The translations under genes and the position numbers were made by a program. Positions 54,408 through 54,453 of a stretch of DNA of 64,000 nt are shown here, piece after piece. Every line of letters starts with the position of its first letter. Within the stretch, counting starts at the first letter, position 1. Origin of the DNA: Blastocystis sp. Blastoise (Eukaryota > Protista > Bigyra: Opalinata); assembly GCA_039096225.1 (NCBI GenBank), contig JBBPEB010000015.1:1178001-1242000 (forward strand). Direction: 5' to 3'. The notes under the pieces were generated by a model that saw only the letters and a program-made list of their open reading frames with translations, had not been told where the DNA came from and searched no databases.

Positions 54408-54453
<46 letters not shown>

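Follow-up and report, generated by a model that had tools for sequence, protein, structure and literature searches.

A Blastocystis intron that appears to consist of a TA microsatellite between two guanines

Introduction

Nearly all introns in the human subtypes of Blastocystis have a length of exactly 30 bp (PMC12129017). Three isolates from tortoises, with genomes of 26-33 Mb, 21-23% GC and 12% low-complexity sequence, have introns whose length is greater and varies more than the 30 bp seen in the human subtypes (PMC12129017). The paper that describes these tortoise genomes mentions neither splice motifs nor microsatellite introns (PMC12129017).

Outside the genus, several systems bear on how repeats and base composition relate to introns. 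Structured introns with (AC)m-(GT)n repeats are found in 10% of zebrafish genes and do not rely on U2AF2 for their splicing (Lin et al., 2016, Genome Res, PMC4691745). In plants, introns are marked by AU-richness together with consensus splice sites, and an arbitrary synthetic AU-rich intron is reported to be spliced (Goodall and Filipowicz, 1989, as summarized in PMC2682935). Introners and introns derived from tandem arrays are known as many near-identical introns scattered over a genome (PMC9860276). Our literature searches found no published description of introns made purely of a dinucleotide repeat.

Here, we analyze a candidate for such an intron in the tortoise-gut Blastocystis sp. 'Blastoise', whose assembly (33.3 Mb, 34 contigs, ~21% GC) fits isolate Rus-B from a Russian tortoise. 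The window, by which we mean the whole 64-kb stretch of DNA under analysis, corresponds to C4:1178001-1242000, and coordinates given without a contig are positions within it.

Results

The TA run and its borders

A sequence-only reading of this window had described an intron made entirely of microsatellite, and our own reading of the letters agrees: the 44 nt at 54408-54451 on the plus strand are exactly G + (TA)21 + G. The segment begins with a GT at 54408-54409 and ends with an AG at 54450-54451, and there is no second GT or AG inside it. If the segment is kept, the frame runs ...GTG AAA TAG and stops at 54406-54408. If it is removed, the frame continues in phase as ...VTVK-Y-VIPG..., as that reading had proposed, and the public protein KAK8803516.1 (P0001) has the same residues across the junction. 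The three features concerned are as follows.

54380 to 54407, plus strand: exon 11, 28 nt, which encodes (Y)SDSTVTVK followed by TA, the opening bases of a split Tyr codon; from the exact spliced mapping of KAK8803516.1
54408 to 54451, plus strand: intron 11 of 19, G(TA)21G, phase 2, GT-AG; the segment is missing from the public protein KAK8803516.1
54452 to 54519, plus strand: exon 12, 68 nt, with the T that completes the split Tyr codon and then VIPGPIRPSLSNLYNSISIYNK; from the spliced mapping of KAK8803516.1

TA runs are common in the window, where 117 consist of five or more units, and the run at 54408-54451 is the sole pure G(TA)nG with n of at least 5. A pattern search of the window for G(TA)10G gave no matches.

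The earlier description of a segment with neither a polypyrimidine tract nor a branch-point consensus also stands. The longest pyrimidine run is 1 nt and the pyrimidine share 0.5, which does not make a polypyrimidine tract, and the segment contains no YTNAY-like branch motif, looked for at 10-40 nt before the 3' splice site, since YTNAY is impossible within a TA run. Its features are otherwise those of a U2-type GT-AG intron, namely GT and AG borders, a reading frame that is restored by removal, the splice consensus of the host gene and a length within the host gene's range. Branch-site motifs are degenerate in many eukaryotes, so the missing YTNAY lowers the case for U2-type membership of intron 11 and does not exclude it.

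Two other readings of the segment were rejected. A U12-type intron needs RTATCCTT at the 5' end and a branch site resembling TCCTTAAC; the actual 5' end is GTATATAT, with no TCCTT. Reassignment of the TAG codon fails because the host gene stops at TAA, and reading through 44 nt would shift the frame in any case.

The host gene and its introns

The exon at 55917-56171, used as a query, returned the 672-residue hypothetical protein KAK8803516.1 (WA158_001210) with 100% identity over the exon. Spliced mapping onto the window places the whole protein exactly, with exons of 26-255 nt and introns of 38-201 nt (median 54).

The ends of these introns bear on how unusual intron 11 really is. Nearly all of the 19 introns (18) start with GTAT and 10 start with GTATAT; all 19 end in TAG and 12 end in TATAG. 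The host splice consensus is GTATAT...TATAG, a point that the sequence-only reading had missed and that makes intron 11 less exotic. Because the usual sites of the gene are GTATAT and TATAG, a G(TA)nG element can be read as both splice sites fused by more repeat. The host gene contains a graded series, from ordinary introns through introns 7, 16 and 9 to the pure-TA intron 11.

52729 to 56314, plus strand: coding sequence of the host gene, 672 codons plus TAA spread over 20 exons, with 19 GT-AG introns; KAK8803516.1 / WA158_001210
53931 to 53972, plus strand: intron 7, 42 nt, G(TA)7 ... GTATATAG (G(TA)7 plus 26 nt); an ordinary short intron with TA-repeat ends
55240 to 55345, plus strand: intron 16, 106 nt, G(TA)35 and then a ~35-nt tail; between ordinary and pure-TA
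54195 to 54248, plus strand: intron 9, 54 nt, GT + (TA)22 + TTCTTTAG; near-pure TA, with no YTNAY

YTNAY occurs at least once in 17 of the 19 introns, and introns 9 and 11 alone are without it. Pyrimidine runs are short throughout the gene, at 1-9 nt across the 19 introns and 3-9 nt in the introns other than intron 11.

The gene also carries repeats of other kinds. Intron 15 (54853-55053; 201 nt, 1% GC) is a minisatellite intron, nearly all of it an AT-only tandem repeat of ~10 nt (TATTATATTT-like). A third repeat type is seen in intron 18 (55767-55916; 150 nt), where units of ~19 nt are repeated (ATTATAATAATCATATTA-like), and intron 5 contains an AT-only stretch at 53533-53612. Two further features of the window lie outside the gene: a 163-codon open reading frame at 57609-58097 (plus strand) that looks like an ER-resident protein of the thioredoxin fold, with WCTSS replacing CxxC and a HEEDEL end that forms a KDEL-type retention signal, and a tRNA-Ser (anticodon AGA) at 3548-3629 (plus strand), the sole Rfam and ARAGORN match in the 64-kb window.

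The host gene had been labeled an SM gene from the sequence alone, and this label has fared unevenly. It gains from similarity to the Sec1 family by protein language model and predicted fold: all 30 of 30 feature matches in the ESM Atlas are Sec1-family clusters (score 0.96, SCFD2-like), and the predicted structure of KAK8803516.1 matches the Sec1 family with TM 0.66-0.70 over 570 residues. It loses on profile searches: KAK8803516.1 has no match in Pfam, the Sec1 HMM PF00995 included, and a PDB sequence search was likewise empty. A six-frame scan of the genome with PF00995 matched six other loci, the host-gene locus not being among them, and a word search of the protein collection with KAK8803516.1 returned only the protein itself, with no detectable homologues. 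A divergent, SCFD2-like member of the Sec1 family is plausible, and we use the SM label as a lead.

Evidence that intron 11 is spliced

We consider it highly probable that 54408-54451 is a genuine, ordinary-sized U2-type GT-AG intron, belonging to a genome-wide class whose likeliest origin would be takeover by TA repeats. An annotation artefact would mean that the segment is kept, so that the protein ends at TAG, or that other splice sites are used, the model having been forced by the predictor. The model at this junction could in principle be a BRAKER3 prediction, and there is no homologue of KAK8803516.1 against which the junction can be compared.

Several observations speak against such an artefact. 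In the annotation of the tortoise genomes, a STAR junction had to be covered by 3 or more reads, and Mikado scoring was tuned to strictly RNA-seq-supported introns (PMC12129017); the pipeline thus preferred junctions with RNA support. The run itself offers no alternative GT or AG, and the conserved Sec1-like C-terminal part downstream requires the spliced frame. That frame is open only with the phase-2 donor, as the remaining GT sites of exon 11 lead to a TAA in exon 12. Run X1 contains 0.39 of the sampled 31-mers from 52700-56400, and 31-mers wholly within coding exons make up 0.387 of that interval; the X1 share is therefore as for a fully spliced transcript. In addition, a like element is exactly excised in an Mrp/NUBPL gene, as described below. 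An artefact of annotation is, in our judgment, very unlikely.

Three other searches were negative. A 171-residue query centered on the junction found no transcript-derived protein fragment spanning it in the protein collection, no contig encoding KAK8803516.1 is on record, and two host-gene exon words had no matches among JGI metagenome contigs.

Related elements across the genome

A genome-wide count of G(TA)nG runs, a check that the sequence-only reading had put forward, revealed a large excess. The composite pattern, in which G(TA)9T and (TA)5G are separated by 0-30 nt and which spans 31-61 nt, has 621 matches genome-wide (279 forward, 342 reverse), compared with 14 for a control consisting of the pattern read backwards. 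Among the first 100 composite matches listed, 61 are pure elements, with a flat length spread over 32-58 nt, and 39 contain small non-TA interruptions. Extrapolating from the 61% that are pure among these first 100 listed, there are roughly 380 pure G(TA)15-29G elements in the genome. Searches at single lengths, each over the whole genome, gave the following counts.

n = 21 (44 nt): G(TA)nG 21, G(AT)21G control 1
n = 14 (30 nt): G(TA)nG 31, reversed control 6
n = 12 (26 nt): G(TA)nG 58, reversed control 3
n = 9 (20 nt): G(TA)nG 182, reversed control 38

The excess is not an effect of composition, because the flank triplets of the control, GAT and ATG, occur more often than GTA and TAG. It extends to 20-26 nt, a size at which an intron could not stand alone; at these lengths the excess arises because short runs form the G-flanked ends of longer introns. 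As the ratio to the control is for this purpose a weak control, we relied on a frame test and on Pfam continuity.

For the frame test, we took the 300-nt flanks of 77 other pure elements and called the coding frame independently on each side, using a codon model for which the host gene was the only training set. The called frames agree with exact removal of the element in 51 of 77 cases (permutation null 38%, p<1e-5). Agreement depends on length: the frames are consistent for 6 of 14 elements of 32-36 nt, for 26 of 36 elements of 38-44 nt and for 19 of 27 elements of 46-58 nt. Most pure elements of at least 38 nt therefore behave as in-frame introns (45 of 63, or 71%), and about one third of the pure elements tested are not stand-alone in-frame introns. 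These figures suggest a lower length limit near 38 nt, which is the length of the shortest host-gene intron. The phases called at the 77 pure loci are skewed (38 in phase 1, 29 in phase 0 and 10 in phase 2). Lengths that are multiples of three (36, 42, 48 and 54 nt) show no depletion and account for 16 of 61 pure loci.

Pfam continuity comes from a gene on another contig, in which a pure element interrupts a conserved motif.

C3:1618388-1619675, minus strand: Mrp/NUBPL-like P-loop NTPase gene, PF10609, with many small exons
C3:1618707-1618764, minus strand: G(TA)28G, 58 nt, inside the DMPPGTGD motif of that gene
C3:61409-61450: G(TA)20G, splitting DPP-G-CKDIDDAL where an RNB domain begins

The exon at C3:1618763-1618822 matches positions 103-122 of PF10609, and the exon at 1618591-1618707 matches 122/123-160. 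When the G(TA)28G element is taken out, DMPP-G-TGD is restored and the Pfam coordinates are seamless; exact excision of this predicted intron is proven by homology. In the third of these features, the two halves of DPP-G-CKDIDDAL are parts of what we take to be one conserved RNB motif.

With the public model, roughly 380 mostly frame-keeping elements and the Pfam case in hand, the proposal that a bare TA run between two Gs is a sufficient intron in this organism appears to hold.

The same body of elements bears on the quality of the assembly. The nanopore-based assembly might have turned a more complex intron into pure TA by collapse or faulty polishing, and with nanopore reads and short-read polishing the unit number of long dinucleotide runs is indeed prone to error. 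Such an error would have to account for some 380 pure elements with a flat spread over 32-58 nt, a strong strand specificity and mostly kept frames. The G borders and the exon flanks of intron 11 are ordinary sequence, and a few wrong TA units would leave its reading the same. We regard a collapsed or mis-polished intron as very unlikely.

Recognition by the spliceosome

The splicing machinery encoded in the genome looks conventional, with a canonical U1 5' end (AUACUUACCU), a canonical U2 box (GUAGUA) and an encoded SF1-HH domain. We accordingly rejected the idea that the snRNAs co-evolved with TA-rich sites. U2 snRNA is encoded by three identical full-score genes on C13, C16 and C24. Two further sequences lie ~1.7 kb apart at C16:1277488-1279349, one a U2-like copy of lower score (95.7 bits) and the other a fragment (41 bits); they may represent variant or decaying U2 genes.

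The rules of base pairing allow GUAUAU to pair at +1 to +3 and +6 only when set against the canonical U1 5' end, and recognition of the 5' splice site is therefore weak on paper. We favor a model of intron definition, in which the two splice sites, the extreme AU-richness of the intron against GC-richer exons, and a length above ~38 nt would together mark the intron. The branch would then fall on one of the adenosines of the UA run, outside any consensus. Pairing of the run with GUAGUA could take the form UAU[A]UAU, an arrangement that would involve two G-U wobbles and place the bulged A at a non-standard position.

Base pairing within the intron may offer additional help. The body of the segment had been noted as fully self-complementary, and in our calculation intron 11 alone is predicted to fold into a 19-bp A-U hairpin with a minimum free energy (MFE) of -16.6 kcal/mol. 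Bridging by such a hairpin, in which the (UA)n run folds, joins the 5' and 3' sites and takes the place of branch and tract signals, would be compatible with intron definition. The ordinary introns of the host gene likewise have complementary ends (GUAUAU...AUAUAG), and repeat-bridged introns that are independent of U2AF2 have precedent (PMC4691745). Against a bridging role, a slippery helix of A-U pairs only would sequester both splice sites: they are buried in the predicted fold, the centroid structure is without pairs, and the MFE structure accounts for 31% of the ensemble. Host-gene introns of 41-54 nt, moreover, fold weakly (intron 12, -1.9 kcal/mol) and yet are annotated as spliced. Hairpin bridging thus seems a doubtful, if possible, helper, and we favor definition by the sites, AU content and length.

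Origin of the pure-TA introns

The sequence-only reading had also seen in intron 11 a route to intron birth by microsatellite expansion. In a de novo birth, a TA run or a GTATAG in coding sequence would expand by slippage until it could be spliced. A G(TA)nG element by itself brings both consensus splice sites, and none of the reading frames through a TA run meets a stop codon, which makes in-frame intermediates conceivable. The length of TA runs also changes fast. At C4:170097-170140 (L012) and C3:1551869-1551918 (L078), the flanks are identical for ~150 nt on each side and the repeats are (TA)21 and (TA)24, respectively; this pair reflects either recent duplication plus microsatellite slippage or assembly noise. 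Because the flanks are identical and the TA count differs, the repeat number is the fastest-changing character at these loci, unless the difference is assembly noise.

Other observations argue against birth. Searches of the protein collection (the word search with KAK8803516.1 and the 171-residue query) found no orthologue or paralogue without the intron. Most elements of 32-36 nt do not behave as introns in their own right (the frame is consistent in 6 of 14), and intermediates of such a size would for this reason disrupt the gene. Finally, the graded series within the host gene and the interruptions in 39 of the first 100 matches listed are what takeover of an older intron predicts. We judge de novo birth unlikely.

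As the splice consensus seeds TA runs at both intron ends, and as a graded series is present, takeover fits at least as well as birth. TA takeover of older introns is the likeliest origin and would fit better than birth by expansion: replication slippage would have started at the two splice sites of an older intron, where TA is abundant, and continued until the body was pure TA. An introner or transposon origin was rejected, since the elements have no terminal repeats or target-site duplications, the copies vary only in TA number, and the flanks are unrelated coding sequences.

Discussion

TA introns show how little sequence a spliceosome needs. A broader reading, which we hold only tentatively, is that tortoise-gut Blastocystis may routinely splice hundreds of introns whose sole information is GU...AG, (UA)n and a length of at least ~38 nt, with non-canonical branch selection, for instance through the UAU[A]UAU pairing with the U2 box or through hairpin bridging, and that TA slippage may mainly drive changes of intron length, and possibly intron gain, in the lineage. 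If this is true, the series from n = 15 to 29 is a natural ruler for the minimal intron. If RNA confirms the splicing, the elements would form a natural minimal substrate with two consensus splice sites and an AU-only body, lacking a branch motif, a pyrimidine tract and internal decoy sites and present in a continuous length series, and both the choice of branch and the measuring of short introns by a canonical spliceosome could be tested in one organism. Microsatellite slippage would also be tied to the evolution of intron size, in a genus where the intron length of the human-associated members is fixed at 30 bp. For annotation, GT-AG-flanked TA runs of at least 38 nt in this genome are candidate introns and not low-complexity sequence to be masked.

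Among the systems that resemble intron 11 most are the short U2 introns of Blastocystis and of other AT-rich protists. Like them, it has GT-AG borders, a size suited to intron definition, canonical U1, U2 and SF1 to work with, and many companions in its gene. It differs from them in a body that is a pure dinucleotide microsatellite, with neither a branch motif nor a pyrimidine tract. Introners offer a likeness in number, as the Blastoise genome holds 21 identical 44-mers. The identity of the TA elements, however, is that of a microsatellite and not of mobile copies, and their lengths are continuous.

Of published cases, the plant and zebrafish introns come nearest. The synthetic AU-rich plant intron retained a branch-point consensus (PMC2682935), whereas the TA introns of Blastocystis are natural, number in the hundreds and are without one. 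The (AC)m-(GT)n introns of zebrafish share with the TA elements a dinucleotide repeat that can pair across the intron and membership of a large class, the pairing in Blastoise being that of a predicted hairpin only. In zebrafish, two complementary repeats lie at opposite ends of longer, otherwise ordinary introns, whereas in Blastoise one self-complementary repeat, with a putative structural role, is the whole intron and both of its splice sites.
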